This document shows positions 10,918 through 59,754 of a stretch of 64,000 bases of DNA, one piece after another. The number at the start of each line of letters is the position of its first letter. Position 1 is the stretch's first letter. Location of the stretch: the sequence record OR620964.1. One strand, given 5' to 3'. Under the pieces are notes generated by a model. It saw only the letters and a program-made list of their open reading frames with translations, was not told where the DNA came from and made no database searches. Position numbers and translations under genes: made by a program.

Positions 10918-10926
10918 TATTTACAG
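10918..10926 (-). promoter_or_regulatory. Putative phage promoter motif CTGTAAATA
   Basis: Exact motif in gene orientation, 30 nt upstream of the HNH ATG. Confidence 0.6.
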
Positions 10927-10928
10927 TT

Positions 10929-11768
10929 TTAGCCAAAGACTTCTACTGTTTTCGTCAAACTATTATGATAGTTCTGCTCCATATCCTTTGCACACTTACG
11001 GACGATTATATCCGATGCCTCACGGAAGTTAGCAATTGTATGCTCAGGCATGTTAGCTTTAGCCCACGCATTGACTGCCTGATGGAATCCTATAAGGCTA
11101 GTTGCATTAGCTTGAGCAAGAGGGCCAAGGACTTCTGCGTTTAGTGTATCACCGAGTTGACCTACGTCTCGGAGTGCCCGCATGTCAGCAATGATCTCAC
11201 GCATCTGGTCATAGATTTTCATCAACGCATACACATCACGGCTCTGTTTCTTGGCGAAGTAGAGACGTTCGCATATACGTGCCATGCGTCGTAGCTTAGT
11301 AAACATCACTTGGTATTCAGTTAACTGGTCGTTCTCTTGCTTGACCGCATCTGGAATAGCAGCAAGAACATCCTGCATCTGTGCATCAAGGTCTCGGCCC
11401 TCATTCGCACTAGGCAGAGCTAATCCTGTTTTCTTCTTTTTCTTCTTCTTAATTGTTTCTTCTACAACATCCTTCTTCTTCTTCTTTTTAGTTTTTACCA
11501 TAGTCTGCTCTTTAGCAGCAGCGATATCCGCATACATGCTGGCAGCATCTAAGGCAATAGCATCTGGATCAAACTTCTCTGTCTTCTTCTTTTTAACTTT
11601 AGAGCTAGTTATTATTTTGACTTTCTTTGCCTTAGTCGGAGTAGATACTGACTTGGCTGGCTTAGCTGTGGACTTGGCCTTTATTGTTTTCTTCTTTTTC
11701 TTAGTGCTTGACTTAGATGCCGTTCTTCCAATAGCATCCAGATCATCGAGACTGATTGATGTGGCCAT
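10929..11768 (-). CDS. Hypothetical protein with Lys-rich N-terminal half and helical C-terminal domain
   Basis: Start refined to ATG 11768 (GGGG RBS); several KKKKK runs. Confidence 0.85.
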   Translation of the reverse strand: MATSISLDDLDAIGRTASKSSTKKKKKTIKAKSTAKPAKSVSTPTKAKKVKIITSSKVKKKKTEKFDPDAIALDAASMYADIAAAKEQTMVKTKKKKKKDVVEETIKKKKKKKTGLALPSANEGRDLDAQMQDVLAAIPDAVKQENDQLTEYQVMFTKLRRMARICERLYFAKKQSRDVYALMKIYDQMREIIADMRALRDVGQLGDTLNAEVLGPLAQANATSLIGFHQAVNAWAKANMPEHTIANFREASDIIVRKCAKDMEQNYHNSLTKTVEVFG

Positions 11769-11788
11769 ATTAATCCCCAAGAAACGAT

Positions 11789-12636: not shown

Positions 12637-12684
12637 TGTCTTCTCCTGAATGTTTAGACTGTATGAAATTAGGATATAGAGGTT

Positions 12685-13850: not shown

Positions 13851-14954
13851 TTAACCTACCTTAGTCAGTGCGAGATATTCAATCAGCGTTCGAAGTTGAT
13901 CGTTATACGTCCCATTGATAAGAGCGCGAGCCATCATCAATTGATTACTTGATACAAGACGCACGATTTTTGCTTGATACTCAGGGCTGGCTTGCATGTT
14001 CTGCGACAGGATATAAAAGAAACTATTACAGAACGTAGTGCGTGATACTTGGCCGCCTTCTAAATCAGACACATCCTGATGGGCTTTTAACAGGCAATAT
14101 AATGCTGCATGAAGCTCATCACTATTATCAGGCATGTTGGTTGATAGTGCGGCACTGATCTTCATGATACCAGCAGCGAGGAAATCAACAACGTTTTTAT
14201 CTACATACTTCGACGCTTCTGGTGCAAGGTCAGGCAAGTATACCCAGTCCATGAGATAGAGCGTGTAGTATAGTGGGAAAGACTTATCAATAACATCAGG
14301 CATAATGCCAACAGAGAAATCTTTCCACATAGCCAGATTGTAGTGCCACTCGGTGAATGGAACAGTACGCATCAAAGGTGATAGACCGAGTCCCCAATCT
14401 TGTGTTTTGAGACTAGACACATCGGGCAAGTTTGTAATAGGCCCGTATGAAGACTGTGTTACCAGATTTACGTAGTTACGAGTAATGGCACCAATCGTAT
14501 TGTATAGCACATTCAGGATATCTATTCCATTCCCATTCAAGCCGAACATCATGGAACGAGGGATACTGATAGTGATATACTCATTGGCTCTCTCTTGTCC
14601 CCATAATCGCCAATAGCGAGCACGTCCGTTAATGTACAAGGGCTTAGGCAGGTTCTTCCTGACTCTAGGTACCATGCTGAATGTAAACACGATACCTGTA
14701 TCTACCATGATGACAGATTTATCAGGGACGCCCGCGAATCCAATGGACATCTTGTTATCAGGCGCATATGCATTCACAAGAGTAAATGATAGCGACTTAA
14801 CAAACGGTAGTTGCGCCGCAGCAAGGTCGGATATCACTTGCTTGACGATAGGTCCAAGAGAGTATGAGTTGGAGCTACGCATCTGGTTAGGTCTATACAA
14901 ACCAGAGTGTGCTCCTTCCTTAAAGCTCCGAGATACCTTAGTGTGTTGGATCAC
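13851..14954 (-). CDS. Hypothetical protein, 367 aa
   Basis: GTG start overlapping the upstream TGA (GTGA). Confidence 0.8.
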   Translation of the reverse strand: MIQHTKVSRSFKEGAHSGLYRPNQMRSSNSYSLGPIVKQVISDLAAAQLPFVKSLSFTLVNAYAPDNKMSIGFAGVPDKSVIMVDTGIVFTFSMVPRVRKNLPKPLYINGRARYWRLWGQERANEYITISIPRSMMFGLNGNGIDILNVLYNTIGAITRNYVNLVTQSSYGPITNLPDVSSLKTQDWGLGLSPLMRTVPFTEWHYNLAMWKDFSVGIMPDVIDKSFPLYYTLYLMDWVYLPDLAPEASKYVDKNVVDFLAAGIMKISAALSTNMPDNSDELHAALYCLLKAHQDVSDLEGGQVSRTTFCNSFFYILSQNMQASPEYQAKIVRLVSSNQLMMARALINGTYNDQLRTLIEYLALTKVG

Positions 14955-16228
14955 TTCACAGATTGCTTCAAGAGTCGTTTCTGATCAGGATTCAAGCCAA
15001 ACACTTCGGCAACTTGATCAATCTTAGCAAGAGTCAATACGCCCTTAGCTGTACCACCAGATGAAGTCAGTGATACCTCTACGAACTCACGACCACCACG
15101 TCCTTTAACAAGACGATGAATCATGCTGTTCTTACCATTCTTACCAGAGCGCAATACAACGGATGCCATTGCAAGAACTTCTTGAACTGCTTGTTTCTTC
15201 TCGGCAGGAGTAAGGCCGCGAATAAGACGAACATACAGCTTATCGTTCTGCACACGGACGTTATCGAGAATCTCAACTTGACGTCCTGCAACTGTGTGGT
15301 CACGTTGACCAAGCATGGTTGTATTACGAATTGTAGAAGTATCTTTGTTGATAGGCTTACGCTCACTGTAGTTCAAGAAGCCATCTACAGCCAACAGACT
15401 GTTGATTGCTTTCTTAAGTGAAGGTGCTGTTTCAACAATACGACCCATAGGGAATGAGCCAGGTACTTTCTCATCCACAAGCGTAGTCACGTAGTTAGTA
15501 GACAGGCCGGTCGCAAGTGCAATAGACGTAGACAGAACTACTGCATAGTTCTGGTAGTGATCGCCATCTGAGTTAACAAAGTTATCAACAAAGATATAGG
15601 TCTGGAATGTAATTGGATCAACACCAGACGCGATGAATGTACGCATACGGATTTTGCTGAACTGTTCTTTATTAAGAATCTTAGTCAGGTAGTTGGCAAT
15701 TGTAGCAGCCAGCTTGGTATGCTCAGGAGGTGCATCTTTCTTAACATCAATGCTCATCAACTTAACCATCTTAGTCTGCAACTCTTGTGCCTGTTTGATA
15801 ACAGTCAGAAGGTTGGAAGCAGCCTGTGTCTGGTTTTTAAATGAAGCAAATGTCTTGCTGCTTAGAATCTGGTAAGCAACATTCAATTCTGCCAGCGCTT
15901 GATTAAGCTGACCTACTTGTCGATTATACTTGGCTTTAGATTGAACATCTGTGATATCCAGTTTAGAGATATCAATAACAGACGTAAGGTCGATTGTCTT
16001 GGACTGTTTACTTTTGATTGATTCAAGGTCAGATAGCTCTATGGCCTTAGCTGATACGGACGCAAGTTTGGTAGGAATCTTGTATCCCGATACGCTCTCA
16101 ACAATGCCATTCAGTAAGTTGGTAAACTCAGTAGCAGTGCGGGCGCCACGCAATGAATTCATGTTCTTACTACTGTAGTTAATAGAGGTGCTGATAGCAA
16201 CCTCTGTCTTTTTGGCAGTCTTAGCCAT
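14951..16228 (-). CDS. Hypothetical protein, 425 aa, possibly virion structural
   Basis: GAGG RBS; long ORF. Confidence 0.85.
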   Translation of the reverse strand: MAKTAKKTEVAISTSINYSSKNMNSLRGARTATEFTNLLNGIVESVSGYKIPTKLASVSAKAIELSDLESIKSKQSKTIDLTSVIDISKLDITDVQSKAKYNRQVGQLNQALAELNVAYQILSSKTFASFKNQTQAASNLLTVIKQAQELQTKMVKLMSIDVKKDAPPEHTKLAATIANYLTKILNKEQFSKIRMRTFIASGVDPITFQTYIFVDNFVNSDGDHYQNYAVVLSTSIALATGLSTNYVTTLVDEKVPGSFPMGRIVETAPSLKKAINSLLAVDGFLNYSERKPINKDTSTIRNTTMLGQRDHTVAGRQVEILDNVRVQNDKLYVRLIRGLTPAEKKQAVQEVLAMASVVLRSGKNGKNSMIHRLVKGRGGREFVEVSLTSSGGTAKGVLTLAKIDQVAEVFGLNPDQKRLLKQSVK

Positions 16229-16310
16229 GATCGTCCTCTGCTTGTTGGAATTCGGATTACGTTAAAAATTAGATAAAAAGGTGTCAGATGCAGATAATAT
16301 TGCGCAATTG

Positions 16311-16319
16311 TATTTACAG
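16311..16319 (-). promoter_or_regulatory. Putative phage promoter motif CTGTAAATA inside a hairpin loop
   Basis: Exact motif flanked by inverted repeat arms 16290-16304 and 16327-16341. Confidence 0.55.
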
Positions 16320-16367
16320 GAAATCACGCAGTAATATCTGCTCTGGTTGAAATTAGTCACAGAACGT

Positions 16368-16397
16368 AAAAAGGGCAACCCGAAGGCCGCCCTTTTT
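16368..16397 (-). terminator. Rho-independent terminator, possibly bidirectional
   Basis: GGGCGGCC-TTCG-GGTTGCCC with T tracts on both strands, after the histone-like gene. Confidence 0.85.
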
Positions 16398-17126: not shown

Positions 17127-17269
17127 GATACATTCCTCGTTTCATTTATTGTTGCCTCTCTTTGAGGCGTAGAGAATTAAATTCGTTCTGCACAGGAAAA
17201 TTAGTATATTTATTTTGTTTTAGCAGGTATTTATTTTAAATTTATTTCAAATAGTTTCTACTATATTTC

Positions 17270-18316
17270 CTATGAAGCAGTACCTAATTCAGACCTTATT
17301 TTGGCTATTTCTTTCATGGCTCTATCACGCATATGCTTCTTAATCCCTGACTCTTTTAAGAAAGAACGTAGACCGTCAGTAGGATCTATATCCGATACTT
17401 GTTGCTCCGATACATCGATAGTATCTACATTGTTAATATCTATTTTCTTATTTGTGGCATAGAGCTGGGCAATGTTTGGTACGCGTGTTCTTATATCGCC
17501 AGGTATAGTTATACTATCCTTAACGTAGACACGATATCGTATTGCCGCATTGACATCAAGCTGAGACCATTGCTTCTGGTCTGTAATCATAACAGTCTCG
17601 AAGCGGAAGCCAGGCTTACTATCAACAAACTTGTGTTTGACCACCAGCTTCTTCTTAACGTACTCTGCCTTGAAGTGAATGAATCCTTTAGGCAATCCCT
17701 CACCAAATGTTTTCTGATAAGGACTACCATTGTACAGGAAGCGCTTGGCCTCAAGATACTGGTATAAATGGATATGACCACTAATAGTAAAATCGCGTTC
17801 ATCTACTTTGAGATCTTTCTTAGTGCGTAGTGGACGACCATTATCACCAAGTGCACCTATTGCTTCCGTATGACAGAAGTTTAGACAAGGCTTCTTATGC
17901 TTGATAGACTTACGCGCAGGGAAAGGTAGGAAGTTAACAATCACTCCATCTATCTCTACTTGCTTTGGTCTAAGGAAGATATGAAGTGATTTTAAGAAAT
18001 CCCAATCACAAAAGCGCTTGATCAGATCCATAGACGTTTGGGTATTATCCGCCCAATCATGGTTACCACCACAGTACCACGACTCGATGATACCTTCGTA
18101 CTTACGGAAGTGCTGCAACAGCAACTCTTTCGTAGTATCTGCCATAGTATACTTATCTGTGATATCGCCAGGAATGATTACATGCTTGATTCCATGCTCG
18201 ACTGCATAGTTATAGATTCTATCTATTGTCTCAAGCTGACGTTGAATATGGTCTTGGGGGAAATGATTTGCCAGCGCTTCAAAGTGCCAGTCTGAGGTTG
18301 ATATACCTTCGAACAT
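17270..18316 (-). CDS. sbcD: SbcD/Mre11/gp47-like metallophosphoesterase nuclease
   Basis: Motifs SDWH, PGDITD, GGNHD, FCHT, SGHIH. Confidence 0.9.
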   Translation of the reverse strand: MFEGISTSDWHFEALANHFPQDHIQRQLETIDRIYNYAVEHGIKHVIIPGDITDKYTMADTTKELLLQHFRKYEGIIESWYCGGNHDWADNTQTSMDLIKRFCDWDFLKSLHIFLRPKQVEIDGVIVNFLPFPARKSIKHKKPCLNFCHTEAIGALGDNGRPLRTKKDLKVDERDFTISGHIHLYQYLEAKRFLYNGSPYQKTFGEGLPKGFIHFKAEYVKKKLVVKHKFVDSKPGFRFETVMITDQKQWSQLDVNAAIRYRVYVKDSITIPGDIRTRVPNIAQLYATNKKIDINNVDTIDVSEQQVSDIDPTDGLRSFLKESGIKKHMRDRAMKEIAKIRSELGTAS

Positions 18317-18348: not shown

Positions 18349-18357
18349 TATTTACAG
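18349..18357 (-). promoter_or_regulatory. Putative phage promoter motif CTGTAAATA
   Basis: Exact motif right after a terminator, 33 nt upstream of the sbcD ATG. Confidence 0.6.
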
Positions 18358-18387: not shown

Positions 18388-18477
18388 CTACTTAACCTGC
18401 TCGCGTAGTTCTTTAATACGATTGACGCTCTTTTCCATTTCGCCAAGAAGGCGAAACACTTCACCATAGTTAATCAT
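18388..18477 (-). CDS. Small 29-aa protein MINYGEVFRLLGEMEKSVNRIKELREQVK, absent from the ORF track
   Basis: ATG overlaps the YspA TGA (ATGA); ends just before a terminator; amphipathic helix pattern. Confidence 0.6.
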   Translation of the reverse strand: MINYGEVFRLLGEMEKSVNRIKELREQVK

Positions 18478-18998
18478 CTTTTGTTCTCCGTTACGAATCT
18501 GCCAGTTTCTTTAAAACTTAACCAGTCGCGCCATAGATACAGGACTCTCTTTTGATTAGCTAGTGCGTAATCAATACAGTTCTGTGTTCCAGAGGGCGCA
18601 CCAGAAGAGAGCGCAAATATCGTATCACTCTCTTTTACTATTGCGTGGTTACGAGTATCCAACGCAATCACGGGCGTTATTAACGCAAGCATTTCTTTAT
18701 CAGTTATAATACGGACTTCAGAGCTTCTGTTTAGGATAGTATCCAAATCTAGAACGCTCGCCAAAGGCCATCGTGCATTAAATCCAAGGTAGGGAATCAT
18801 ACTGATAACCTTATGCCCTTGTTCTATTGCAGCAACAGCCATTGCTTGGTCGAAGCCTAGCGCACATCCTTGTACAATAGTAACATCTGTATCTAACCTG
18901 AGTAGGATACGATGCGCGAAGCGATATAACTTTTTCTTAGCTATCGCTCCATATCCACCTAGGCGATTAGGTCTATGTCCAGTAACACCAACGATCAT
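18474..18998 (-). CDS. YspA/DUF1273 SLOG-family protein
   Basis: IVGVTGHRP, QGCALGFDQ, RNHAIV, SGAPSGTQNCIDYA. Confidence 0.8.
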   Translation of the reverse strand: MIVGVTGHRPNRLGGYGAIAKKKLYRFAHRILLRLDTDVTIVQGCALGFDQAMAVAAIEQGHKVISMIPYLGFNARWPLASVLDLDTILNRSSEVRIITDKEMLALITPVIALDTRNHAIVKESDTIFALSSGAPSGTQNCIDYALANQKRVLYLWRDWLSFKETGRFVTENKR

Positions 18999-19020: not shown

Positions 19021-19029
19021 TATTTACAG
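19021..19029 (-). promoter_or_regulatory. Putative phage promoter motif CTGTAAATA
   Basis: Exact motif 23 nt upstream of the YspA ATG. Confidence 0.6.
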
Positions 19030-24391: not shown

Positions 24392-24443
24392 AGATCATTC
24401 CTCAATATCGGGTTTACTCATCGAAATTATCATTAGAACGAAG

Positions 24444-29098: not shown

Positions 29099-29107
29099 TA
29101 TTTACAG
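29099..29107 (-). promoter_or_regulatory. Putative phage promoter motif CTGTAAATA
   Basis: Exact motif after a terminator, heading the sbcC operon. Confidence 0.6.
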
Positions 29108-30253: not shown

Positions 30254-30331
30254 TTGTGAAATCTCGCATTGTTATCATTAATTGTCGTGTATTGAAATTA
30301 GAAAGAAAGTTCAAATTATGCCATAAATAAG

Positions 30332-31688: not shown

Positions 31689-31697
31689 TATTTACAG
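31689..31697 (-). promoter_or_regulatory. Putative phage promoter motif CTGTAAATA
   Basis: Exact motif between a terminator and the dnaX start. Confidence 0.6.
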
Positions 31698-32015: not shown

Positions 32016-32057
32016 AAATGCTCCGAGGTATAATATCTAATATCTCTTTACAGTTTA

Positions 32058-36141: not shown

Positions 36142-36183
36142 TAAGTAGGTATATCTAGCATTTACAGATATACATACAAATAC

Positions 36184-39220: not shown

Positions 39221-39229
39221 TCTTTACAG
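39221..39229 (-). promoter_or_regulatory. Putative phage promoter motif variant CTGTAAAGA
   Basis: 28 nt upstream of the polymerase-like ORF. Confidence 0.5.
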
Positions 39230-41384: not shown

Positions 41385-41486
41385 AGATAGATCTCCTTTG
41401 TCTGCTCAAAATTACTAAATAGCACAATTCTCACCTTTTGCCCTTAAAATGATTATTTATAAGCAGACAATAAAAGGATAATTAAA

Positions 41487-42075: not shown

Positions 42076-42084
42076 CTGTAAATA
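42076..42084 (+). promoter_or_regulatory. Putative phage promoter motif CTGTAAATA
   Basis: Exact motif on the plus strand, 35 nt upstream of ATG 42119. Confidence 0.6.
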
Positions 42085-42118: not shown

Positions 42119-42754
42119 ATGGTCGCTAAGAAAAAGAAACTCATTCCTATAAAAACAGTCACGGTCCTAGAGGCAGATAAAGGGCCAGTGGCTACATGTC
42201 CTGAAATGGAAGAACAGAACTTCCAATTTCATTTTCGTGGTAAGTGTCCTATGGTACGCTGCCAATATTGTACTACTGTTACACCTAATGGTTGCATGGC
42301 ACTAGACAGAAAAGAAAGTGCCGAGCGTACAATCAGCAACAAGGAGATTTATCATTACAAGAAAGGCTTGTTCCCTGAACTCGAAGACAGCGACCAAAAG
42401 CAACTGGACGCTCTCGTCCGTAAGTCACAAACTCGTGCCCGTGTTGCTATCTGCCTTGATATGTTTATCCATTCCCTTGATGGTTCTAATGTTGATAAGT
42501 CATTTCAATATATTCCCCATCGGCATACAACGGTAGACCATGTTCATGAGTACCTGATACAGACATTCCCTGCGTACTTACCTTGGATGCTTGTTCACTT
42601 ATCTGATGTTGATAAGTTCAATGAGGTTGTAAGTCAAGTAACGCAATCAGAACTTAACCTAGGTACAGCACTTAAATTAACGCCTAAGAAGTATCAGACG
42701 TTTTGCCAAGCGCTGCGCCAGATGAAAGACTCTTCTGGAGAAACCAATGAGTGA
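42119..42754 (+). CDS. Hypothetical protein, 211 aa, with Lys run and Cys cluster
   Basis: MVAKKKK; CP...CPMVRCQYC...GC. Confidence 0.8.
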   Translation: MVAKKKKLIPIKTVTVLEADKGPVATCPEMEEQNFQFHFRGKCPMVRCQYCTTVTPNGCMALDRKESAERTISNKEIYHYKKGLFPELEDSDQKQLDALVRKSQTRARVAICLDMFIHSLDGSNVDKSFQYIPHRHTTVDHVHEYLIQTFPAYLPWMLVHLSDVDKFNEVVSQVTQSELNLGTALKLTPKKYQTFCQALRQMKDSSGETNE

Positions 42755-45248: not shown

Positions 45249-46313
45249 TTATTTTCTCTTCTGTTGCGTTACCTTTTCTATACGATTCCATCCTAACTTC
45301 TTTGCAGGAATAAGACATTTACTTCCGTGCTTATCCTTTAGTGCCAGACGTACTTCTTTAATTATTTCTTTAGGTGCGTTATCCGGGTCCATCTTTACTA
45401 ACTTGCCTCTATCATCTTTCTCTCTAGGCAGTTTAAAATGTAGAACGCGAATATGACCATTAGATGCACCAAACGAAGCAGTGATATTATTACGAAGTAG
45501 TTTACCACCACCATCATTGTCTGTCATTGTATAGACTGTATGCACACCTAGAAGCTCTATCGATCGTCGCTTAACATCACCGAACTGCTCGGCTCCCAGG
45601 ACAGCAAGTGCTGGTATTCCTTGCGAGATAAGAGCGAGTGCATCACGCGGACCTTCAACAATAACAACATAGTTGAGTGCATACTTTCGAAGTAAGTCTT
45701 TTACTAGCTGTAGTGGAAACAGACCTTTCTCTTTGGCCCAATCACCTTGTGAGTTAACATAACTCGTACCAGTAAACTGTTTTGATAAGTATGCAGCAAT
45801 ACCACCTACATACTTTGTACCACTCTTGCAAGGGAAGAAGCAAATGTTTGTGCCTGTTCGCTGTGCGTTTAGAAGACCACCGGCCGCACGAACAAGAGAG
45901 CCAGGATAACCACGCCAGTCAACATCATCAGGCCATTCCATATAGCTTGGTCTACCTAGTGCTTTCATCAATGATACTAACGATGGATATGTACCAATCT
46001 TTGTACCCATCTTATCATAGATGGTGCGCAATGCTGATAGTGAGTTCTCACCAGCATCTTTCAAGCGCCACTCTTTGATTTCTGCTAGCCCTACTTTTCT
46101 GGCCAACACATTCCAATGGCCTTTCTCTCCGCAGCCGAAGCAATGGAAGCTGCCAAGAGGTATTTCCATACCTACCGCAGTATAGATACCACAGCTAGGA
46201 CTTCCATCTGCATGGAAAGGACAACACACCATAACAGAGTCACCCGCAAACTTCTTATCGCCTTCTATCTTTCCTATCTCATCCATTATGAGTTGGTGAA
46301 CATCTTCTGCCAT
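45249..46313 (-). CDS. dnaG: DnaG-type DNA primase (zinc finger plus TOPRIM)
   Basis: CCPFH...FHCFGC zinc finger; VVIVEGPRDALAL; MTDNDGGG. Confidence 0.9.
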   Translation of the reverse strand: MAEDVHQLIMDEIGKIEGDKKFAGDSVMVCCPFHADGSPSCGIYTAVGMEIPLGSFHCFGCGEKGHWNVLARKVGLAEIKEWRLKDAGENSLSALRTIYDKMGTKIGTYPSLVSLMKALGRPSYMEWPDDVDWRGYPGSLVRAAGGLLNAQRTGTNICFFPCKSGTKYVGGIAAYLSKQFTGTSYVNSQGDWAKEKGLFPLQLVKDLLRKYALNYVVIVEGPRDALALISQGIPALAVLGAEQFGDVKRRSIELLGVHTVYTMTDNDGGGKLLRNNITASFGASNGHIRVLHFKLPREKDDRGKLVKMDPDNAPKEIIKEVRLALKDKHGSKCLIPAKKLGWNRIEKVTQQKRK

Positions 46314-46352
46314 ACCCTATCTCCACACTAATTTCATCATGTATATAGCTAG

Positions 46353-46361
46353 TATTTACAG
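46353..46361 (-). promoter_or_regulatory. Putative phage promoter motif CTGTAAATA
   Basis: Exact motif oriented toward the lone minus-strand primase gene, 40 nt upstream. Confidence 0.65.
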
Positions 46362-46384
46362 TAAAACAAGCGGCGGAGCCCACT

Positions 46385-46705
46385 ATGAAACAGCGCTATG
46401 TAGAAAAAGCTATTCGTCAATTCTATGCACCCCATTGGTTGCGACTGAGTGATGAATTAGGCGTAGACCCAAGAACCTGTGGCCACTTCAATCGTCAAGG
46501 CGATATGATTGGTCTGAATATAACGACAAGCACAGAACTACCTGTGGTATTAAAGCTCGCCCATCTGGAGCTTATTAGGACTGTAAATGAAGGAGAGGAA
46601 GGTGAGATTCCCGTAGTTCGTACTACTTATAAATTTGGTGCTCACTTTTATGAATTCATTTACTTCGCGAACAATATTGCGATAGGCGAGAAGACCAGTG
46701 AGTAG
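46385..46705 (+). CDS. Hypothetical protein, 106 aa
   Basis: GGAG RBS. Confidence 0.75.
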   Translation: MKQRYVEKAIRQFYAPHWLRLSDELGVDPRTCGHFNRQGDMIGLNITTSTELPVVLKLAHLELIRTVNEGEEGEIPVVRTTYKFGAHFYEFIYFANNIAIGEKTSE

Positions 46706-52363: not shown

Positions 52364-52994
52364 TCAATTCCTAATCGTTCGGCAGCATCTTATGGCGCTA
52401 CTGTTTTATGTACGTTGCTATACATACGCGCCAAGCAATACCTTATTACCTGTTCCCTATGTGAAAGATTTGCCTACGCTGGAACCAACTGCTATTCGAA
52501 ATATGGCGCAGCGGGCATACTGTGATCTTATCTCATATGGAGCGCCTGAGTTCGTATTGCATCAAGCATTTAGTCTTTTGTTGCTTATCAATCCACAGGC
52601 AGATAAGCAACAATTAAGCGGTATATACGGACTGCGTGGTGCTGTTGGTGAATACTTTATTCAATCACCTTTGTCTGGAAATAATCACGTATGTGATAGC
52701 ACTGTTAGACTTCGGCTTGTTGAGACAGCAACAGCTATCGCCTCTGCGCATTATCTTGTGCAACTACATGCCCAGATTATAAAGTTGCATTCGTATATTC
52801 CCCTGCCTGCTGAGGCATTACCTTTCGATTCTATGACATTCCAAGATATACAATCTTGGTCTTCATCTGAACTTGTCCGAATCAACCAAGAAGCTATTGC
52901 TGTAGGCATGAAATTCCCACAACTTGCTGTGTTAGACTCGCACTATGCCCATGCTGATAGATACTTCGCTACTTATGGATATGAAAATGAATAA
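52347..52994 (+). CDS. Hypothetical protein, about 215 aa
   Basis: Start refined to ATG 52347 (AAGG RBS). Confidence 0.75.
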   Translation: MKPNNNQFLIVRQHLMALLFYVRCYTYAPSNTLLPVPYVKDLPTLEPTAIRNMAQRAYCDLISYGAPEFVLHQAFSLLLLINPQADKQQLSGIYGLRGAVGEYFIQSPLSGNNHVCDSTVRLRLVETATAIASAHYLVQLHAQIIKLHSYIPLPAEALPFDSMTFQDIQSWSSSELVRINQEAIAVGMKFPQLAVLDSHYAHADRYFATYGYENE

Positions 52995-53433
52995 AGCTCG
53001 TGGTGGATACTGGTATTGCGTACCTGATGAGAAATCCTTGTCAATGCTTCGTGGACTGGCCTCAGCGGTTTCTGAACCAGATGACATGGAAGGACTACAT
53101 GTAACTCTGGCCTATGATAATCGAAATCCTTTATCTTCTGTTCAGGTTAATGAAGAAGGTAGCTGGGATGCACGAATTGTAGGAACGGCAATGTTTGGGC
53201 AGGATAAGGACACACTGGTGCTTCTTCTTGAATCGGATGAACTTCAGGCAGAGCATAAGCGTATACACTCTGATGGTGCAAAGTTTGACTTTACTCCGTA
53301 TGCACCACACATTACCCTTGTTACGAATGCACGGGAACTTGAGCGTGAGTGTATTCAAGATATTCTGGATCATCCGAAATGCCCACCATTGATTATTCGT
53401 CTTATTGATCAATGCCGAGAGCTGATCGACTAA
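52987..53433 (+). CDS. acb1: 2H phosphoesterase, Acb1 (T4 57B)-like anti-CBASS nuclease
   Basis: Two HxT motifs, LHVTLAY and PHITL; LVLLLES...GAKFDFTPYAPHITL closely resembles the Acb1 C-terminus as I recall it; start 52987 or 52981. Confidence 0.7.
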   Translation: MNKARGGYWYCVPDEKSLSMLRGLASAVSEPDDMEGLHVTLAYDNRNPLSSVQVNEEGSWDARIVGTAMFGQDKDTLVLLLESDELQAEHKRIHSDGAKFDFTPYAPHITLVTNARELERECIQDILDHPKCPPLIIRLIDQCRELID

Positions 53434-53441
53434 ACATATAA

Positions 53442-53464
53442 GGGAGCCTTAGCGTTCCCTTTTT
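53442..53464 (+). terminator. Rho-independent terminator
   Basis: GGGAGC-CTTAGC-GTTCCC-TTTTT. Confidence 0.75.
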
Positions 53465-53483
53465 CCAATTCTAGGAGCAAACA

Positions 53484-53765
53484 ATGCATATCTTAATCAG
53501 TTTGTCTAAAGACCAAACGCTTGCAGAGAAAGCAGAAGAAGCTGCTTCCCGTAAGGCTACTATGTTGATTCAAGGCCCGGATGACCTTGAGAATATGCAG
53601 GAAACGGAGAGCACCAAAGAAAGTGCTAAAAAGACAGAGCAAGAGAAGAAGTTAGAAGATCAGGAAAAACGGTTGTCTGGACTAGGTAAGCCTGACCCGG
53701 AGAAAGATCCAACGCACAGCGGCTCCGATATTCAAGATGAGCATGACCAAAGAATTCAACTATAA
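53484..53765 (+). CDS. Acidic, charged protein with MHILISLS tag, 93 aa
   Basis: GGAG RBS; lies between a terminator and a promoter motif. Confidence 0.8.
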   Translation: MHILISLSKDQTLAEKAEEAASRKATMLIQGPDDLENMQETESTKESAKKTEQEKKLEDQEKRLSGLGKPDPEKDPTHSGSDIQDEHDQRIQL

Positions 53766-53766
53766 T

Positions 53767-53775
53767 CTGTAAATA
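53767..53775 (+). promoter_or_regulatory. Putative phage promoter motif CTGTAAATA
   Basis: Exact motif 33 nt upstream of the sigma gene. Confidence 0.6.
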
Positions 53776-53807
53776 GAGAGTACGAGCTACCAGAGGTCTT
53801 TATCTCT

Positions 53808-54848
53808 ATGAAGAACAAGTCTAACCTTACTGGCGGCCAGATAGAATATGTGATGGATACATTGCTCTACGATTGCTTGCGTGAGGTCGTTGAGAATACT
53901 GATGTATTTGATGTCCAACTCACGTACCTTCTTGGCCTTATTACTTCAAACAAAAAGCGAAAGCCATACAACGCTGAATCCCGCGAACGTGCGATCAGTC
54001 TTTTGATAAAAGCGCTTACAGTTCCGCGTGATCAAAAGATGCAATACGTGATGGAAATAAAAATGGAGCGCAATTTTATCTATGTGTTCCTGACAAATGT
54101 AATTGACCGATACTACGCGACATATGTCGGTCTGTATAGAACATTCATCGGCACTAACGATGACCTTGTTCGTAAAACAAAAGCCAAGCAACTTGATGCT
54201 ATCGTCAGGTCACTTGGTGGTTCGTCTCGGTCTAGCTTGTTTGTTGCACTTAATCGCCTGCATGATATGCTTCCTCAGTTTCAGGAATACTTCCAGACTG
54301 TTGTTGAAGACTTCTATCGCCTGTGTACGCAACAAGCAAAGTTCTATGTTGATACGAACAAGAGTAAGCAGTATGATACATCTGATGTTAAGCAGAACTT
54401 CTTGCGTAACGTCTTAGTTGCAATAAACAAGTATGACGCCTCACGCGGAGCAATCGTCTCATATGTGAAGTGGTGGATCTTGAATGCTCAAACATGCAGT
54501 AGCAGTGAGCATGAATATGGCATTGCCTACACCATACCTCAGACGCAACGTAAGCGACTGGCTACAGGTGAAGATCCGACGACAATAAATTTCTCAATAA
54601 GTCTTGATGCGCCGTCTTCTGAATCCGATGAAGGTTCGGACGCGAGTCTCCATCATAAGGTGAGTGAGTCTGGTCATCTAGAGGATTCGGTTGATAGCGA
54701 AAGACGTGCTGAGAAACTGGGGCTATTGGTTAAACGTATCGACCCATATGGCATCGCAAGGCTCACGTTGGATATTAAAGAGTCGTTCGAGCCGGAAGAG
54801 TTGAAGTTTATGAAAACATATATGCGCCAGCAGGGCCTGATAAACTAA
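53808..54848 (+). CDS. Phage sigma70-family RNA polymerase sigma factor, region 4 apparently absent
   Basis: Region 2 DVKQNFL...AINKYDASRG...SYVKWWILNA; region 3.2 ISLDAP; short C-terminus with no clear HTH. Confidence 0.8.
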   Translation: MKNKSNLTGGQIEYVMDTLLYDCLREVVENTDVFDVQLTYLLGLITSNKKRKPYNAESRERAISLLIKALTVPRDQKMQYVMEIKMERNFIYVFLTNVIDRYYATYVGLYRTFIGTNDDLVRKTKAKQLDAIVRSLGGSSRSSLFVALNRLHDMLPQFQEYFQTVVEDFYRLCTQQAKFYVDTNKSKQYDTSDVKQNFLRNVLVAINKYDASRGAIVSYVKWWILNAQTCSSSEHEYGIAYTIPQTQRKRLATGEDPTTINFSISLDAPSSESDEGSDASLHHKVSESGHLEDSVDSERRAEKLGLLVKRIDPYGIARLTLDIKESFEPEELKFMKTYMRQQGLIN

Positions 54849-54855
54849 CTGGAAA

Positions 54856-54864
54856 CTGTAAACA
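54856..54864 (+). promoter_or_regulatory. Putative phage promoter motif variant CTGTAAACA
   Basis: 41 nt upstream of the SSB gene. Confidence 0.55.
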
Positions 54865-54904
54865 AGAAGTATACAGCAACCTACTCAATATTGAGGATTT
54901 ATAA

Positions 54905-56137
54905 ATGGGACGTGGTTTCGATTCCGTTCAAGATAAGCAGCAACGTGATAATCTACGTGAGACTGATATCTTTGAAATTTTATCGCTTTCTCAGAAAGCA
55001 AATAACCAGTGGGTTTCACTGCGTTTCCTTCCCGGTGATTTGCTTCCTATTAAAAAGCACTGGATTAAAATTATGGGTGGTAAGGATAAGGATAAACCAA
55101 TCACTATCCCCCGCATGTGTGTTAGCTTTGACCCTGATAACCAAGAGAAGCCTCTTGAGGGACGTGATTGTCCTTACTGTGGTATTCAACATGGTAATGA
55201 TGAGACAGGCGCTCCTGCCCGTGTAGACTTCAAATACTTAGCTCAGGCGATTAGCCGTGATGCTCAGGAATCTAAGCCACGTAAACTCAAGCCAATGACT
55301 AAGAAAGAAAAGTCAACTGGCAAGAAAGAAATGACTTCTGATTCATGGACTCCTGTAGTAGTCGTGCCTTTAACACCAGGCGTAGCGCGTAAGATCAAAG
55401 AATACAGTGAACGTAACTTCCACGAAGTCAAAGATAAAAAGACTAAGAAGAAAACTAAAACTGCATTCCCACTGTCTCACGCGAAATATGGCCTTGATGT
55501 TGATATCAAGTACAACCCAAAAGCTGCTGGTGCGGAGAAGTATTCTGTCGATAAAGGTGCGCATACGCCTCTGACAGAAGAAGAGTTAGAATATCTGACT
55601 TGGGACTTCGAAGACTGGAATGAGATCTACGACCTGTTAGGCCGTCTGGATACTCAGGGTGCATTGAAAGACTTTAAATCAATGGACGTTCAGGGCCAAG
55701 ACTCTGAATCCGATGATGAAGATGATGACGATGACGATGGCATGTCTCTTGGCAAGAAAAAGAAAGGCGCTAAGGCAGATAAAAAGAAACGTCGTTCAAT
55801 GAAAGATGATGATGATGATGATGACGACGAAGACGAAGATGATGAGCCTAAGAAAAAGGCCAAGAAAACTAAGTCTCGCCGCATGATTGCAGATGACGAT
55901 GAAGAAGACGATGAACCTAAGAAGAAAAAGAAATCTTCAAAGGTGAAGTCTAAGAAATCTTCTAAGTCAGACGACGATGATGAAGACGAAGACGATGAAC
56001 CTAAGAAGAAAAAGAAATCTTCAAAGGTGAAGTCTAAGAAGTCAAAGTCTGATGATGACGAAGACGACGATGCGCCTAAGAAGAAGAAGAAAAAGAAATC
56101 TTCTGACGATGCACCGAAGAAAAAGAAAAAGAAGTAA
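54905..56137 (+). CDS. gp32-like single-stranded DNA-binding protein with long Asp/Lys block tail
   Basis: LRFLPG...HWI...CVSF...CPYC core; directly upstream of recA; ~130-aa charged tail. Confidence 0.7.
   Translation: MGRGFDSVQDKQQRDNLRETDIFEILSLSQKANNQWVSLRFLPGDLLPIKKHWIKIMGGKDKDKPITIPRMCVSFDPDNQEKPLEGRDCPYCGIQHGNDETGAPARVDFKYLAQAISRDAQESKPRKLKPMTKKEKSTGKKEMTSDSWTPVVVVPLTPGVARKIKEYSERNFHEVKDKKTKKKTKTAFPLSHAKYGLDVDIKYNPKAAGAEKYSVDKGAHTPLTEEELEYLTWDFEDWNEIYDLLGRLDTQGALKDFKSMDVQGQDSESDDEDDDDDDGMSLGKKKKGAKADKKKRRSMKDDDDDDDDEDEDDEPKKKAKKTKSRRMIADDDEEDDEPKKKKKSSKVKSKKSSKSDDDDEDEDDEPKKKKKSSKVKSKKSKSDDDEDDDAPKKKKKKKSSDDAPKKKKKK
55904..56040 (+). repeat. Perfect 53-bp direct repeat, two copies, 84-bp period, in the SSB tail
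   Basis: 55904-55956 and 55988-56040 are identical and encode EDDEPKKKKKSSKVKSKK. Confidence 0.85.
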
Positions 56138-56153
56138 TCTGAAATAATACACG

Positions 56154-56181
56154 GGGTGGCAATCGCCGCCCTTTGTTTTTT
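56154..56181 (+). terminator. Rho-independent terminator
   Basis: GGGTGGC-AATC-GCCGCCC-TTTGTTTTTT. Confidence 0.8.
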
Positions 56182-56204
56182 CTCAAGCGGATTATACCAA
56201 ACAA

Positions 56205-59200
56205 ATGGCAAAAGCAAAGAAAGAAAAGAAAAGCAAAGCTACAGAGCTTGCTGACGTTGGTATTGTTGCAGCCCTAGCATTCGATATGAGTGCTATGATG
56301 GATGAACAACTTGACCAGATCGAAAAGAAAACAAAAATCAGTAGCCAGAGCATGATGCGTCATGCTGAGCGTGTGTCTACTGGTGCCCTTGCTCTTGATA
56401 TGTATTTGGATGGCGGTATTGTACCAGGCGGCTGGTATACTTTCAGCGGCGGTGAGCAATCTTGTAAGTCAACCATGACAATGAGTATCATGGCTACGCT
56501 TATCAAACTTGCATACTCTGGTATTGCCGCTGTGTTTGACTTTGAAGGCTCGACTGATGCCGATTACGTAGCTGGCCAGTTGAAGACTCACGGCGTAACT
56601 GTTGATCCTAAGACCATATTTGGTGTTAAGGATGATGAGACAGGTGAATGGCTAATCAAGCCTCGTATTCGTTACTACTCTCCAGATAACGGTGAGAAAT
56701 TCTTTGACTACATGAGCATGTTGCGTATCCGCCTGCCTGAGAAAGTTGTAGAGAAAGACGGTTCCGCTTATCTGCTATTTGAGAACACTAACGATAACCG
56801 CAAGAAAGTTGGCGATAAGTACGATAAGAAATGGTTCAGCAAGCACAACCAGTTTAAGGTTCCTGCTGCTGATGGTCATATGCAAGCAATTGCTCTTGTC
56901 GATTCCTATCCAGCAATGTTGCCCGATGCTCTGGATGATGACGATGCTTCTAAAGCAATGGCGATTCAAGCTCGTATGTTCTCTGATGGTATCAAGCGTA
57001 TTCGTGGTGGCATGCGTCGTAAGATGATTACGATTGTTGGTGTTAACCAATTACGCCAGAAGCCTGCTACTATGTTCGGCTGCTTGCATGGATCTACGCA
57101 GGTACAGTTCGTTGACGGTCGTGTCCATACCATGAAAGACATAGTTGATCAACGCATTGAAGGTCAAGTGTGGTCTATCAATGAAGAGACACGCGCTATT
57201 GAAGCACGTTCAATCATTGATTGGCATTACAATGGTGATGTTGAGCATAAAGACCATTGGATGAAGATCGTTACTCGCTGCCCTGAGACAGGCAACGGTC
57301 AAGCCTTCGTTATCTGTACTCCTAACCATGAAGTCCTGACAGACAGTGGTTGGAAACGCGCAGACGAGGTTACGTTAACTGATCGCATGGTATCTAAGTT
57401 CACTTCTGTTCGTCGTGGTACTGTTTCGCAATTCCTAAATGCCATGGCTGTTGGTGATAGTTCGATTGTATCGGATAGCCCGAATAGCGGTCTGATGAAA
57501 TTGCAGGATAACCTAAACCCTGACTACGTGCAGTGGAAGATGGATAAGCTCGAACCATTCTTTACGTTTGATTCTTACTCTGCTTCGCATAACGGTGAGT
57601 GTTATATTGCTCGTGGCAGCGACTTCGTTGCGTACTCTAAACATGTGCCTGAACGTGAGCCATGGAAAGTTAAGTTTGATGATATGTCGTTTGCTGTGTT
57701 CTACATGGACGACGGTACATTACACGCAGGCTCTTCGGCCAGATTTAGTGTTAAGCGATTCAAGGGTAACGCCAAAGCACTAGCTAAAATAGCTCAGATG
57801 TGGCAGGAACATGGATTTACCGTGAATCATAGCCACGACGATGGTTGTTTCTGGCTGACGAAAGAAGATAGTATTGAGTTCTTCGAGCGCATTCGCAAGT
57901 ACGTGCCTGACTGTATGCAGTATAAACTACCTACTGAGCATCAAGGCTTCTACAAAGAGTTTGAACTGACAGGCGAAGAACACCAACGTCCTGTATATGT
58001 CGAAGTGATTCGTACTGAAAATGGTAGCGACCGTGCTTTCCGAATGAAAGGTAAGTATGATATCTCGGTTGAGCATAATCATAACTACATGGTTGGCAAT
58101 AGTAAGAACGGAATCGTGGTACATAACAGTCCCGAATACGAGCCATGTGGGGACGCCTTGAAGTTCTACTGTTTTGCGGAAGATACTCTCATTCGCACAG
58201 ACTGTGGCCTGATGACTGCGCCTCAGATGATGAACGTAATCGATCAAGGTGGTAGTTTTGAGATCGAGACGTTGAATGGATTCAGCCCTGCTGCCAAAGT
58301 CTGGCGTGTTGAAGATGCACCGTATCCAATTCTTATTGATGCATCTGGTCATACATATACAGGCAGTGCGCAACATCGCCAGCTTGTGTTTGTTGCAGAT
58401 ACAACGGATAAGAATGAAAGCGTAATGCGCACAGAGTGGCTAACGCTTGAGAAAATGGCTACAGAAGATCGTCCGTACTTCGCTGCAATGCGTTTCGCTT
58501 CTCTGGAAGAACTGCAACAAAATTGCCCAGATGATTATGATGAAGCCCGTGCTCTGATCCTTTCACTGCTTCTGAGTGTTGCACAAATATCGACTCGGTC
58601 TATCTCTATCGGAACAACTCTTGATGGGCGTGTTCTGGAAGAGAAAGGTACTGTTGTTTCTTTCCGTGACGTTAGCACAAACCTTGTTGTACGTGCATTC
58701 TCTAACATCGGCATCATCGCACTGGCACAAGAAGAGAGTGTATTAATTCCTGCGCTAGACGCGACTGAGTTAGGTACGATTGTATCAAACGGTATCACTC
58801 CTGAACAAAGTTCAATGCAGCGTAGTCTAATGATGCAATTGGCTATTATGGATTCTATGCCTGAGTTGGCTCGATTCATTACTGACTTCAATCAGAACAT
58901 ATTCCCTAATGCGCCTGTGTATCTTGATGATAACGAGCGTCTGGCATTTGTGCTTGATGAAATTCGTATGCATGAATATGTGTTTAACGAATATGCAGCG
59001 GCGTATGATGCGATCCAGTTCCAGTTGGCTTATGTAGAAGATTTCTATCAGTTCTGTGGTAACATGGTTCCTGTATCGTGCTCTCTGCGTGTACTGGAGA
59101 AACCTACTGTCTTCTATGATGTGAACGTACCAGAGACAAGTGTTGTTATCACTAATGGCTTTGTTTCGCATAACAGTGATGTTCGTGTTCGTCTGGCTTC

Positions 59201-59708
59201 ACGCGCTGTGCCTGAGGGCTGGACTAAACTGAAAGACGCGCCTGGTATTGTTGGTGAAGATTCAGTAACCGTTGAAGGTGGTACAGACCGTTACCGTTTC
59301 ATCGCAGGCAAGACTATCAAGAACAAGATGGGTGGTATTCCTAACCAACAGACTTGGTTCCGTCTGTGGGAATCTGATGGTGATGGTGTAGCGCGTGGGT
59401 TCGACCCAGTGTTTGACACATGGCACTACATGAAAACTATCGGTCTTGTTGCAGGTCCGCGTAAGAAGATCAAGTTCCTCAAGCCGTGCCCATTAGCTTC
59501 TGAGAAAGCAGTTGATTGGCAGGAATTCAGAACGTTGATTAACGGTGATAAGAAACAGATCACTGATATCTGTAAGAAACTAGGTGTTAAGCCACAAGGC
59601 TTGCGTCTATGGTGCTTCAAGTTCTTGCGCTCCGCTCAAGGTAAAGAACGACTTAAGGCAAGTATTAGCCGTAGTGCCAAGAAAGCACAACATGAAGACG
59701 ACGAGTAA
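56205..59708 (+). CDS. recA: RecA/UvsX recombinase precursor with two inteins (~483 aa after splicing)
   Basis: STGALALD, Walker A GGEQSCKS, FDFEG, Walker B LVDS, QAR, VNQLRQK..MFG/SPEYEPCGDALKFY/SDVRV. Confidence 0.93.
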   Translation: MAKAKKEKKSKATELADVGIVAALAFDMSAMMDEQLDQIEKKTKISSQSMMRHAERVSTGALALDMYLDGGIVPGGWYTFSGGEQSCKSTMTMSIMATLIKLAYSGIAAVFDFEGSTDADYVAGQLKTHGVTVDPKTIFGVKDDETGEWLIKPRIRYYSPDNGEKFFDYMSMLRIRLPEKVVEKDGSAYLLFENTNDNRKKVGDKYDKKWFSKHNQFKVPAADGHMQAIALVDSYPAMLPDALDDDDASKAMAIQARMFSDGIKRIRGGMRRKMITIVGVNQLRQKPATMFGCLHGSTQVQFVDGRVHTMKDIVDQRIEGQVWSINEETRAIEARSIIDWHYNGDVEHKDHWMKIVTRCPETGNGQAFVICTPNHEVLTDSGWKRADEVTLTDRMVSKFTSVRRGTVSQFLNAMAVGDSSIVSDSPNSGLMKLQDNLNPDYVQWKMDKLEPFFTFDSYSASHNGECYIARGSDFVAYSKHVPEREPWKVKFDDMSFAVFYMDDGTLHAGSSARFSVKRFKGNAKALAKIAQMWQEHGFTVNHSHDDGCFWLTKEDSIEFFERIRKYVPDCMQYKLPTEHQGFYKEFELTGEEHQRPVYVEVIRTENGSDRAFRMKGKYDISVEHNHNYMVGNSKNGIVVHNSPEYEPCGDALKFYCFAEDTLIRTDCGLMTAPQMMNVIDQGGSFEIETLNGFSPAAKVWRVEDAPYPILIDASGHTYTGSAQHRQLVFVADTTDKNESVMRTEWLTLEKMATEDRPYFAAMRFASLEELQQNCPDDYDEARALILSLLLSVAQISTRSISIGTTLDGRVLEEKGTVVSFRDVSTNLVVRAFSNIGIIALAQEESVLIPALDATELGTIVSNGITPEQSSMQRSLMMQLAIMDSMPELARFITDFNQNIFPNAPVYLDDNERLAFVLDEIRMHEYVFNEYAAAYDAIQFQLAYVEDFYQFCGNMVPVSCSLRVLEKPTVFYDVNVPETSVVITNGFVSHNSDVRVRLASRAVPEGWTKLKDAPGIVGEDSVTVEGGTDRYRFIAGKTIKNKMGGIPNQQTWFRLWESDGDGVARGFDPVFDTWHYMKTIGLVAGPRKKIKFLKPCPLASEKAVDWQEFRTLINGDKKQITDICKKLGVKPQGLRLWCFKFLRSAQGKERLKASISRSAKKAQHEDDE
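57081..58127 (+). mobile_element. RecA intein 1, 349 aa, with LAGLIDADG endonuclease
   Basis: CLHGSTQV...VVHN, +1 Ser; CTPNH block B; NAMAVGDSS and AVFYMDDG endonuclease blocks. Confidence 0.92.
58170..59174 (+). mobile_element. RecA intein 2, 335 aa, endonuclease motifs apparently degenerate
   Basis: CFAEDTLI...FYDVNV...FVSHN, +1 Ser; GSAQH block B; no clear LAGLIDADG motif. Confidence 0.9.
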
Positions 59709-59745
59709 CAGTCAATTGGGCAAGGATGCCCTATATTTAACTAAT

Positions 59746-59754
59746 CTGTAAACA
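59746..59754 (+). promoter_or_regulatory. Putative phage promoter motif variant CTGTAAACA
   Basis: Follows a small hairpin at 59718-59731, upstream of ATG 59821. Confidence 0.5.

Follow-up and report, generated by a model that had tools for sequence, protein, structure and literature searches.

A conserved single element as candidate middle promoter of jumbo phage fHe-Yen9-02 and its likely reading by a truncated phage sigma factor

Yersinia phage fHe-Yen9-02 is a jumbo myovirus of Y. enterocolitica O:9 with a genome of 248,678 bp. The window considered here is a stretch of 64,000 nt of that genome (OR620964.1, record positions 62001-126000, 100% identity), in which a short motif, CTGTAAATA, recurs ahead of genes for DNA metabolism and ahead of the gene for a sigma70-family protein; positions are those of the window unless the record is named. 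CTGTAAATA is very probably a promoter core. The reading preferred here, which we hold to be somewhat better than an even chance, is a single-element middle promoter read by the phage sigma on the host core RNA polymerase (RNAP), with autoregulation of the sigma gene and use across the clade of related phages. We infer the promoter role, the start position, the reader and the autoregulation from sequence comparison.

The abundance and orientation of the motif are striking. Nine exact copies occur in the window where 0.78 would be expected, and none of 100 shuffles reached nine. The whole genome has 24 exact copies, where Markov simulations give 2.6±1.4; the copies spread beyond the window, and all 24 run along the local gene direction. 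With the whole annotated genome (GenBank gene table) as the reference for motif-gene placement, they lie mostly 22-40 nt ahead of the start codons of DNA-metabolism genes. An unsupervised genome-wide count of oriented intergenic 8-mers ranks CTGTAAAT and TGTAAATA first. A mobile repeat or chance as the origin of the motif is ruled out, as the flanks are uninformative beyond about 20 bp and the counts are far above those of the shuffles. The exact and variant copies in the window are as follows.

10918..10926, minus strand: CTGTAAATA, 29 nt before an HNH endonuclease gene (10529-10888), the head of a unit running into the SNF2 helicase gene
16311..16319, minus strand: CTGTAAATA, 82 nt before gene 078c (14951-16228), with CTAATTT on both sides (16350, 16266)
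18349..18357, minus strand: CTGTAAATA, directly after a terminator hairpin and 32 nt before sbcD (17270-18316)
19021..19029, minus strand: CTGTAAATA, 22 nt (the shortest spacing) before a DprA/SLOG-like gene (18474-18998)
29099..29107, minus strand: CTGTAAATA, after a terminator and 37 nt before 28846-29061, the head of a unit with sbcC (26322-28634)
31689..31697, minus strand: CTGTAAATA, after a terminator and 39 nt before the clamp-loader gene (30360-31649)
32045..32053, minus strand: variant CTGTAAAGA, 29 nt before 31818-32015
36159..36167, minus strand: variant CTGTAAATG, after a terminator and 32 nt before 35665-36126
39221..39229, minus strand: variant CTGTAAAGA, 27 nt before 37598-39193
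42076..42084, plus strand: CTGTAAATA, 34 nt before 42119-42754
46353..46361, minus strand: CTGTAAATA, 39 nt before the primase gene (45249-46313), conserved in phages Yoloswag and AD1
53767..53775, plus strand: CTGTAAATA, 32 nt before the sigma gene, with a predicted start at about 53782, conserved in Yoloswag (as CTGTAAAGA) and AD1
54856..54864, plus strand: variant CTGTAAACA, 40 nt before an SSB-like gene (54905-56137)
59746..59754, plus strand: variant CTGTAAACA, after a terminator-like hairpin and 66 nt before 59821-60537, followed next by a perfect hairpin (59762-59784)
63917..63925, plus strand: variant CTGTAAATC, 53 nt before a gene starting at 63979

A preliminary description of this DNA had given all nine exact copies with the right coordinates and strands. 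Its five variants are all real one-mismatch copies, with the one placed at 32046 belonging at 32045, and CTGTAAATC at 63917 had been missed. It had further held that all copies are intergenic and match the strand of the next gene, which the GenBank annotation bears out, with the qualification that the copy at 16311 overlaps an annotated 38-aa open reading frame (ORF), probably a spurious one. The proposed spacing of 23-41 nt is 22-40 nt as measured for most copies, the exceptions being 16311 (82 nt), 59746 (66 nt) and 63917 (53 nt). At 18349, 29099, 31689, 36159, 46353 and 59746 the motif comes after a terminator-like hairpin with a T-run, in keeping with the remark that it often follows a terminator, and the copy at 46353 is inverted, as had been said, for the lone minus-strand primase gene.

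An alignment of 30 gene-proximal, co-oriented CTGTAAA sites defines the architecture of the signal. Its full form is WWW-CTGTAAATA-N5-TA (16 bp), with information only at positions -3 to 9 and 15-16, the last two being T in 21 and A in 22 of the 30 sites; the -35 region of these sites has no information content. In the relatives the pair at 15-16 is a pyrimidine followed by a purine (Y-R) in 31 of 41 sites (p=1.5e-11). A Y-R step at a fixed distance of 7 nt past an A/T-rich element is a typical start site of bacterial RNAP. The conserved Y-R step 7 nt downstream of the motif thus fits a transcription start, in agreement with the distance of about 6-8 nt predicted earlier. A start at the conserved purine would put TAAATA at -12 to -7 and CTG at -15 to -13. 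The smallest distance from motif to ATG, 22 nt at 19021, excludes an upstream activator box of the -30 type.

The 30-site profile, a single conserved -10-type element without a -35 element, is that of the promoters of phiEco32 gp36-type factors. It departs from the canonical extended -10 register TGnTAnnnT: the consensus, CTG-TAAATA, lacks the spacer base, and its hexamer ends in A. No CTGTAAATA site passes a scan with the sigma70 consensus, and the region holds 29 sigma70-like sites where 40 would be expected.

Conservation extends this picture to the whole clade. The nearer relatives of fHe-Yen9-02 are the Erwinia and Dickeya phages Yoloswag, Y3, Alexandra, AD1 and JA11; the remoter ones are the Pseudomonas phages Lu11 and PaBG, phage NCTB, and jumbo phages of Xanthomonas and Vibrio. 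Yoloswag and AD1 retain the motif at orthologous positions in front of the genes for sigma, primase and SSB. When the sigma-SSB junctions of six phages, infecting Yersinia, Erwinia, Dickeya, Pseudomonas, Xanthomonas and Vibrio and spanning hosts in four bacterial orders, are aligned, TGTAAA is the sole invariant block. Lu11, whose sigma homologue is 35% identical to that of fHe-Yen9-02, carries 'regulatory/promoter' features in its GenBank record, noted as 'putative middle/late promoter', which read CTGTAAATACATAGTA, CTGTAAATACAGTGTA, CTGTAAATGGTGAGTA and similar. The core also stands ahead of DNA-polymerase III, DNA-polymerase and DnaA-like genes in Xanthomonas phage PhiXhv-12 (GC 55%), and ahead of many genes in Vibrio phage GR7B; the sigmas of the Xanthomonas and Vibrio phages that have the motif are 25-27% identical. 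The single-element promoter proposed in the preliminary description agrees well with these data: the motif is oriented, gene-proximal, reduced to one conserved element without a -35, and invariant as TGTAAA in six phages.

The same association is seen in viral contigs. Of 53 such contigs that carry the sigma family, 42 have a (C)TGTAAA 9-mer no more than about 30 nt from the stop codon of the sigma gene. In a distant set of 32 sigma-bearing viral contigs (sigma identity 26-47%, 404 kb), the sigma strand has 124 copies of CTGTAAA and the other strand 22, where 37±6.5 would be expected, and 30 of the 32 sigma loci hold at least two copies. The motif accompanies the phage sigma across hosts of 32-57% GC. 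In PaBG-like contigs (L047, L050, L052, L058), CTGT(C/T)AATA replaces CTGTAAA at the sigma-SSB junction, and other sites of these contigs have CTGTAAAC(A/G). The reading frame in which their junction motif overlaps the last sigma codons varies, showing that selection acts on the DNA. A search for covariation between sigma residues and the motif gave no clean case, the CTGTAAA core being essentially invariant and the PaBG-like contigs mixing both forms. The phages of Yersinia, Erwinia and Dickeya are the only ones with the motif immediately before the sigma gene; in the others this gene lies within a motif-headed operon.

The genes behind the motif form a coherent set. Within the window they comprise the HNH endonuclease/SNF2-helicase unit, sbcD, the DprA/SLOG-like gene, the sbcC unit, and the clamp-loader, primase, sigma and SSB-like genes, along with several unknowns. 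Outside it they include the DNA ligase gene, both DNA-polymerase genes, a helicase unit, and the dUTPase, DNA methyltransferase and ParB-like genes. The earlier target list, mainly replication and recombination genes and the sigma gene, stands in these respects; its 'Pol-like' member at 56205-59708 is an intein-containing RecA/UvsX gene that lacks a motif immediately ahead of it. CTGTAAA sites are depleted from structural modules, which hold 3 of 29 such sites against 13 of 25 sites of a second motif, TAATTT (Fisher p=0.001). The CTGTAAATA regulon looks like the middle, DNA-metabolism class, that is, the middle tier of an apparent three-tier programme and not the whole non-early programme.

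The second motif is oriented too. CTAATTT has 29 copies genome-wide, 28 of them co-oriented, and about 25 copies of TAATTT lie 24-60 nt ahead of genes. Their targets include both tail-sheath genes, the virion-protein, portal and PAAR/baseplate units, the endolysin gene and the operon from 46385. The motif is also conserved before the sheath and capsid-region genes of Lu11 and the head-tail connector gene of PhiXhv-12, and it shows no enrichment in the replication neighbourhoods. (C)TAATTT is probably a late promoter class, to judge from these placements. A third class, AAATAnnCGGCTAAAAT-N~28-TATAAT, has about nine copies at record 124.7-169.6 kb, ahead of blocks of small genes; some begin CTGCAAATA, one base different from the middle motif. 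These are likely early promoters of the host sigma70 (AAATAnnCGGCTAAAAT-N28-TATAAT) with an UP-like or factor-binding element. Copies of the two classes lie at these positions.

12666-12672, 16266-16272, 16350-16356, 17198-17204, 24424-24429, 30295-30301 and 41409-41414, minus strand: (C)TAATTT
46328-46334 and 61378-61384, plus strand: (C)TAATTT
~62700-62765, plus strand: AAATAnnCGGCTAAAAT-TATAAT, with further copies at record 128.5, 133.7, 141.9, 150.3, 152.7, 153.3, 165.7 and 169.6 kb

The candidate reader is encoded immediately behind one of the exact copies.

53808..54848, plus strand: sigma70-family factor of 346 aa, comprising sigma1.2, a non-conserved region and sigma2 (residues 3-234), followed by 3.x/4.1-like remnants

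The protein has no Pfam match of its own and matches only PHROG 17569. Its family is nonetheless recognizable: Pfam Sigma70_r2 is found in 34 of 40 diverse homologues, and the family profile matches region 2 of SigA structures (E=0.004). The Sigma70 r3, r4 and r4_2 models have no match at E<=1 in any of the 40 homologues. In an AlphaFold (AF2) model with a pLDDT, the predicted local confidence, of 82, residues 3-234 align to residues 111-446 of E. coli sigma70 (Z 12-15.6), a span that covers region 1.2, the non-conserved region and domain sigma2; the C-terminus of the model consists of three short helices only. The most invariant block of the family is the head of 2.3-2.4 (Y219, W223, N226, T229; Y..WW..N..T), which runs into 'HEYGIAYTIPQ'.

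Remnants of regions 3.0, 3.2 and 4.1 are probable in this protein. EHEYGIAYTIPQ would form a conserved 3.0-like helix; 'HEYGIAYTIPQ' was likened by eye to 'TIRIPVH' of sigma70 and to its 3.0 helix, the reader of the TG in extended -10 promoters, and 'NFSxSLD' (here 'NFSISLD') to the 'SLD/E' of sigma70 region 3.2, both in low-pLDDT segments. 'DPxGxARLxLDI' resembles region 4.1, the C-terminal helix bundle is 4.1-like, and the homologue from a Vibrio phage terminates directly after the 4.1-like ADPLGYAREALNID. The helix-turn-helix of region 4.2, which reads the -35, was undetected in the sigma and in the 40 homologues. The label 'region-4-less', given to this sigma in the preliminary description, therefore applies to 4.2 and to the Pfam region 4 models and needs amending for the 4.1-like remnant. 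T4 gp55, which had been cited alongside it, is no relative: the phage factor is a sigma70-type sigma1.2-sigma2 protein, and a comparison of the two families by hhalign puts the probability at 0.3%.

These observations suggest a simple mechanism. The phage sigma (53808-54848) would direct the host core RNAP to CTGTAAATA, where the retained sigma2 would melt and read the -10 and the 3.0-like helix could read the TG; since region 4.2 is missing, no upstream element would be needed. Transcription would begin at the conserved purine 7 nt past the motif. WWW-CTGTAAATA-N5-Y-R would in this way drive the middle genes, for DNA replication, recombination and nucleotide metabolism, and the same promoter would be used throughout a clade of RNA-polymerase-less jumbo phages that have a homologous sigma. 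The sigma gene, behind its own motif, would enter positive feedback once read-through supplies the first sigma; what points to this autoregulation is the placement of the motif.

The phage sigma is likely the reader of CTGTAAATA, and this is the best-supported assignment. It is the sole clade-wide transcription factor identified, and it co-occurs with the motif down to 25% identity. Furthermore, the missing 4.2 matches the missing -35, and the conserved TG matches the 3.0-like helix. An A at the putative -7 would suit sigma70 badly, and phiEco32 gp36 is a precedent for a workable arrangement of this kind. An RNA polymerase is absent from the whole-genome GenBank annotation of fHe-Yen9-02. A phage RNA polymerase as reader, considered because '...TATAG' downstream of the motif looks T7-like, was rejected: the 2458-aa product is the SNF2 helicase, the 1167-aa product is RecA, and nothing RNAP-like is annotated. 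No second sigma was found with a sigma-family hidden Markov model (HMM) against the proteome or when the ten genes preceding sigma were compared with Pfam and PHROGs, and the 'possible second sigma' of the PaBG paper has no detectable counterpart in fHe-Yen9-02.

Several points weigh against this assignment. (C)TAATTT, a second oriented motif conserved in the clade before structural genes, is an equally orphan candidate target, and with one recognizable sigma and two motif classes, one class is left without a known reader. In ordinary cascades the regulator made from the middle genes switches on the next, late class. Should the sigma be needed for its own promoter, its first molecules would have to come from read-through of the terminator at ~53440-53470, and upstream of the sigma gene no promoter of the sigma70 type is apparent. 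The A at the proposed -7 and a TG one base off the extended -10 register are unusual for the sigma70 family. Finally, the factor searches compared sequences only and could have missed a gp55- or gp33-like protein.

A first alternative is that CTGTAAATA is a middle promoter read by a host sigma70 holoenzyme that an early phage factor has modified, or by a gp55-like minimal sigma, and that the phage sigma drives the late (C)TAATTT class. The cascades of T4 and SPO1 are a precedent for a sigma that is made in the middle period and switches on late promoters. The sigma gene indeed has CTGTAAATA ahead of it in all lineages, either immediately or at the head of its operon; the (C)TAATTT class is oriented, stands ahead of genes for virion structure and lysis, and has conserved sites in Lu11 and PhiXhv-12; and TAATTT retains T-12, A-11 and T-7, the positions read by region 2 of sigma70-type factors. 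TGTAAATA is moreover 7/8 identical to the T4 late motif read by gp55, and minimal sigmas together with gp33 orthologues have been reported in group-2 jumbo phages by Iyer et al. (PMC7824862). Nevertheless, HMM and phmmer searches of the six-frame ORFs reveal no gp55, gp33, DsbA or second sigma. The best values for gp55 against all six-frame ORFs are E=0.16 with phmmer and E=1.5 with a 25-member HMM, and gp33 and DsbA have no match in the genome, in what is a weak single-sequence test. With no -35 and a poor sigma70 -10, CTGTAAATA would require of the host enzyme a specificity factor as conserved as the motif itself. The conserved TG suits the retained 3.0-like helix of the phage sigma, and phiEco32 demonstrates that a middle-gene sigma can serve its own class. 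We regard this division of labour as unlikely.

A related possibility would join the two classes under a single factor. One truncated sigma would read both -10 variants and run the three-tier programme on host core RNAP across the clade, with its Enterobacterales, Pseudomonas, Xanthomonas and Vibrio hosts: the TG-extended CTGTAAATA would fire unaided for replication genes, and the bare (C)TAATTT would need a late co-activator, such as a replication-coupled syntenic SSB or clamp. If true, this would combine the strategy of phiEco32 with that of T4 (or N4). It is a tentative proposal and, as matters stand, an improbable one.

The host holoenzyme might also suffice by itself, with CTGTAAATA as an unusual extended -10 for unmodified sigma70 and no phage factor involved. 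A TG-bearing, A/T-rich single element with a Y-R step about 7 nt downstream does resemble an extended -10, and a conserved sigma70 is common to the hosts of all these phages. The hexamer after the TG is, however, not TAnnnT in the canonical register, and the sites fail the sigma70 scan; the sigma70-type early promoters of the phage, AAATAnnCGGCTAAAAT-N28-TATAAT, look different; and the motif follows the phage sigma across hosts of 32-57% GC. This explanation is very unlikely.

The least credible proposal is that CTGTAAATA is no promoter at all and serves instead as a signal for mRNA processing or stability in leaders, or as the operator of a phage regulator. In its favour, the motif is strand-specific, lies within leaders and has several copies directly before hairpins, and CTGCAAATA-like sequences recur some 50 nt ahead of the early -10 boxes. 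Against it, the motif is common behind terminators, the very places that call for a new start; its fixed 7-nt Y-R step, W-rich upstream flank and lack of a conserved partner sequence are promoter-like; and its conservation at the DNA level across sigma lineages of 25% identity, also at sites that include the last sigma codons in one frame or another, fits a DNA signal.

Some features of the loci around the motif are of interest in their own right. The 38-aa ORF fHeYen902_079c (16262-16378, minus strand) is covered by one CTGTAAATA and two CTAATTT and is probably a regulatory region, not a gene. At 46313-46385, divergent signals lie within 34 bp, with CTAATTTCA at 46328 on the plus strand for the operon from 46385 and CTGTAAATA on the minus strand for primase; a comparable divergent motif pair stands alongside the primase gene of Vibrio phage GR7B. 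Perfect hairpins start at the predicted transcription start of some CTGTAAA promoters, at 59762-59784 and at record ~31520 and ~51500; the record motifs at 31551 and 51526 have a hairpin immediately downstream. These hairpins may be 5'-leader stabilizers or attenuators.

Upstream of the sigma gene, a strong terminator (53440-53470) separates an Acb1-like gene from a gene for an acidic, low-complexity protein of 93 aa (53484-53765), which has no motif of its own and ends just before the sigma promoter. This small gene is confined to the enterobacterial phages, with clear similarity between Yoloswag and AD1 and weak similarity to fHe-Yen9-02. The Xanthomonas and Vibrio phages have at the pre-sigma position a Cys/His-rich protein that by eye is SWIM zinc-finger-like. 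A conserved small partner gene upstream of sigma was rejected, as the gene differs across the clade. The Acb1-like gene (52951-53433, plus strand) is annotated as 'RNA ligase'; its Pfam match is to Acb1, an anti-CBASS 2H phosphoesterase (E=2e-14), and it is the last gene of the operon headed by CTAATTT at 46328. Two long genes of the window contain inteins: the gene for the 2458-aa SNF2-type helicase (1858-9234, minus strand), whose intein has a LAGLIDADG domain, and that for the 1167-aa RecA/UvsX (56205-59708, plus strand), whose counterparts in Yoloswag and AD1 are about 1 kb shorter.

Most jumbo phages lack an RNA polymerase of their own, and to our knowledge the transcription of this clade has never been studied. 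A literature search found no paper on fHe-Yen9-02 transcription, and the motif string gave no relevant match among the papers listed. Public sequencing runs found with the sequence are DNA metagenomes and a single wastewater 'RNA-Seq' run; compared with 53400-59399, the latter yields only dispersed contigs of related sequence that are probably DNA and whose ends are of no use. A promoter model with a predicted start, together with a middle regulon and a sigma as candidate reader, opens the temporal programme to direct testing and provides a simple annotation rule for operon starts in more than 50 genomes. Several phages of the clade are candidates for therapy or biocontrol against Yersinia, Erwinia and Dickeya. 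In addition, a natural sigma70-family protein that lacks 4.2 and keeps sigma1.2-sigma2 is useful for the study of minimal promoter recognition.

A comparison with known systems places these findings. The late promoter of T4, TATAAATA, is an 8-bp A/T-rich element without a -35, read by a region-4-less sigma, gp55, on the host core. Like the present motif it lacks a -35, and it is 7/8 identical to TGTAAATA. Late transcription in T4 also involves gp33 and the sliding clamp as co-factors. The phage sigma differs from gp55 in retaining sigma1.2, a full sigma2 and 3.x/4.1 remnants, and the gp55 HMM finds nothing here; unlike the T4 late system, CTGTAAATA targets replication genes and not structural ones, and gp33 was undetected, in the weak single-sequence test noted above. 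The bacterial extended -10 (TGnTATAAT) is likewise independent of a -35, with a TG upstream of an A/T-rich hexamer and a start about 7 nt downstream. In fHe-Yen9-02, by contrast, the TG is one base closer, the hexamer TAAATA ends in A, an invariant C precedes the TG, and the motif is confined to phages with this sigma family.

The phiEco32 system is closer in design. Its gp36, a middle-gene product without region 4, reads the single element tAATGTAtA, with a start 6-8 bp downstream (PMC8948821). The parallels are a region-4-less sigma70-family protein, the use, probable in fHe-Yen9-02, of the host core RNAP, and a -10-type element of about 9 bp without a -35. They differ in the motif, in that phiEco32 is a small podovirus, and in its helper protein gp79; phiEco32 also uses one motif for middle and late genes, whereas the structural genes of fHe-Yen9-02 carry a different one. 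No phiEco32-like phage is among the 81 tblastn matches, so that a relationship in sequence is not detectable.

The closest parallel is Pseudomonas phage Lu11 (JQ768459; Adriaenssens et al. 2012, J Virol 86:6369), a member of the same clade. It has the same 16-mer, CTGTAAAT(A/G)-N5-TA, in the same orientation, before replication-type genes that include the SSB-like gene after the sigma homologue. Its host and GC content differ, and its sigma gene has no motif immediately in front. The promoter features of Lu11 are predictions, and its record makes no link to the sigma; the properties of its 'putative middle/late promoter', a co-oriented 16-mer before non-early genes in a phage with a homologous sigma, recur in fHe-Yen9-02. 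More generally, the sigma homologues encoded by RNAP-less jumbo phages are presumed to guide host RNAP to phage promoters (PMC13282480, PMC7824862). The motif carries a putative promoter annotation in Lu11 already, region-4-less sigmas with single-element promoters are established for T4 and phiEco32, and the CTGTAAATA system is a largely expected case of a phage reprogramming the host RNA polymerase, with no new principle. What is added here is the extension to fHe-Yen9-02, the 16-bp architecture with its probable start, the clade-wide footprint, the restriction to DNA metabolism, a distinct late-type motif and the domain dissection of the sigma.

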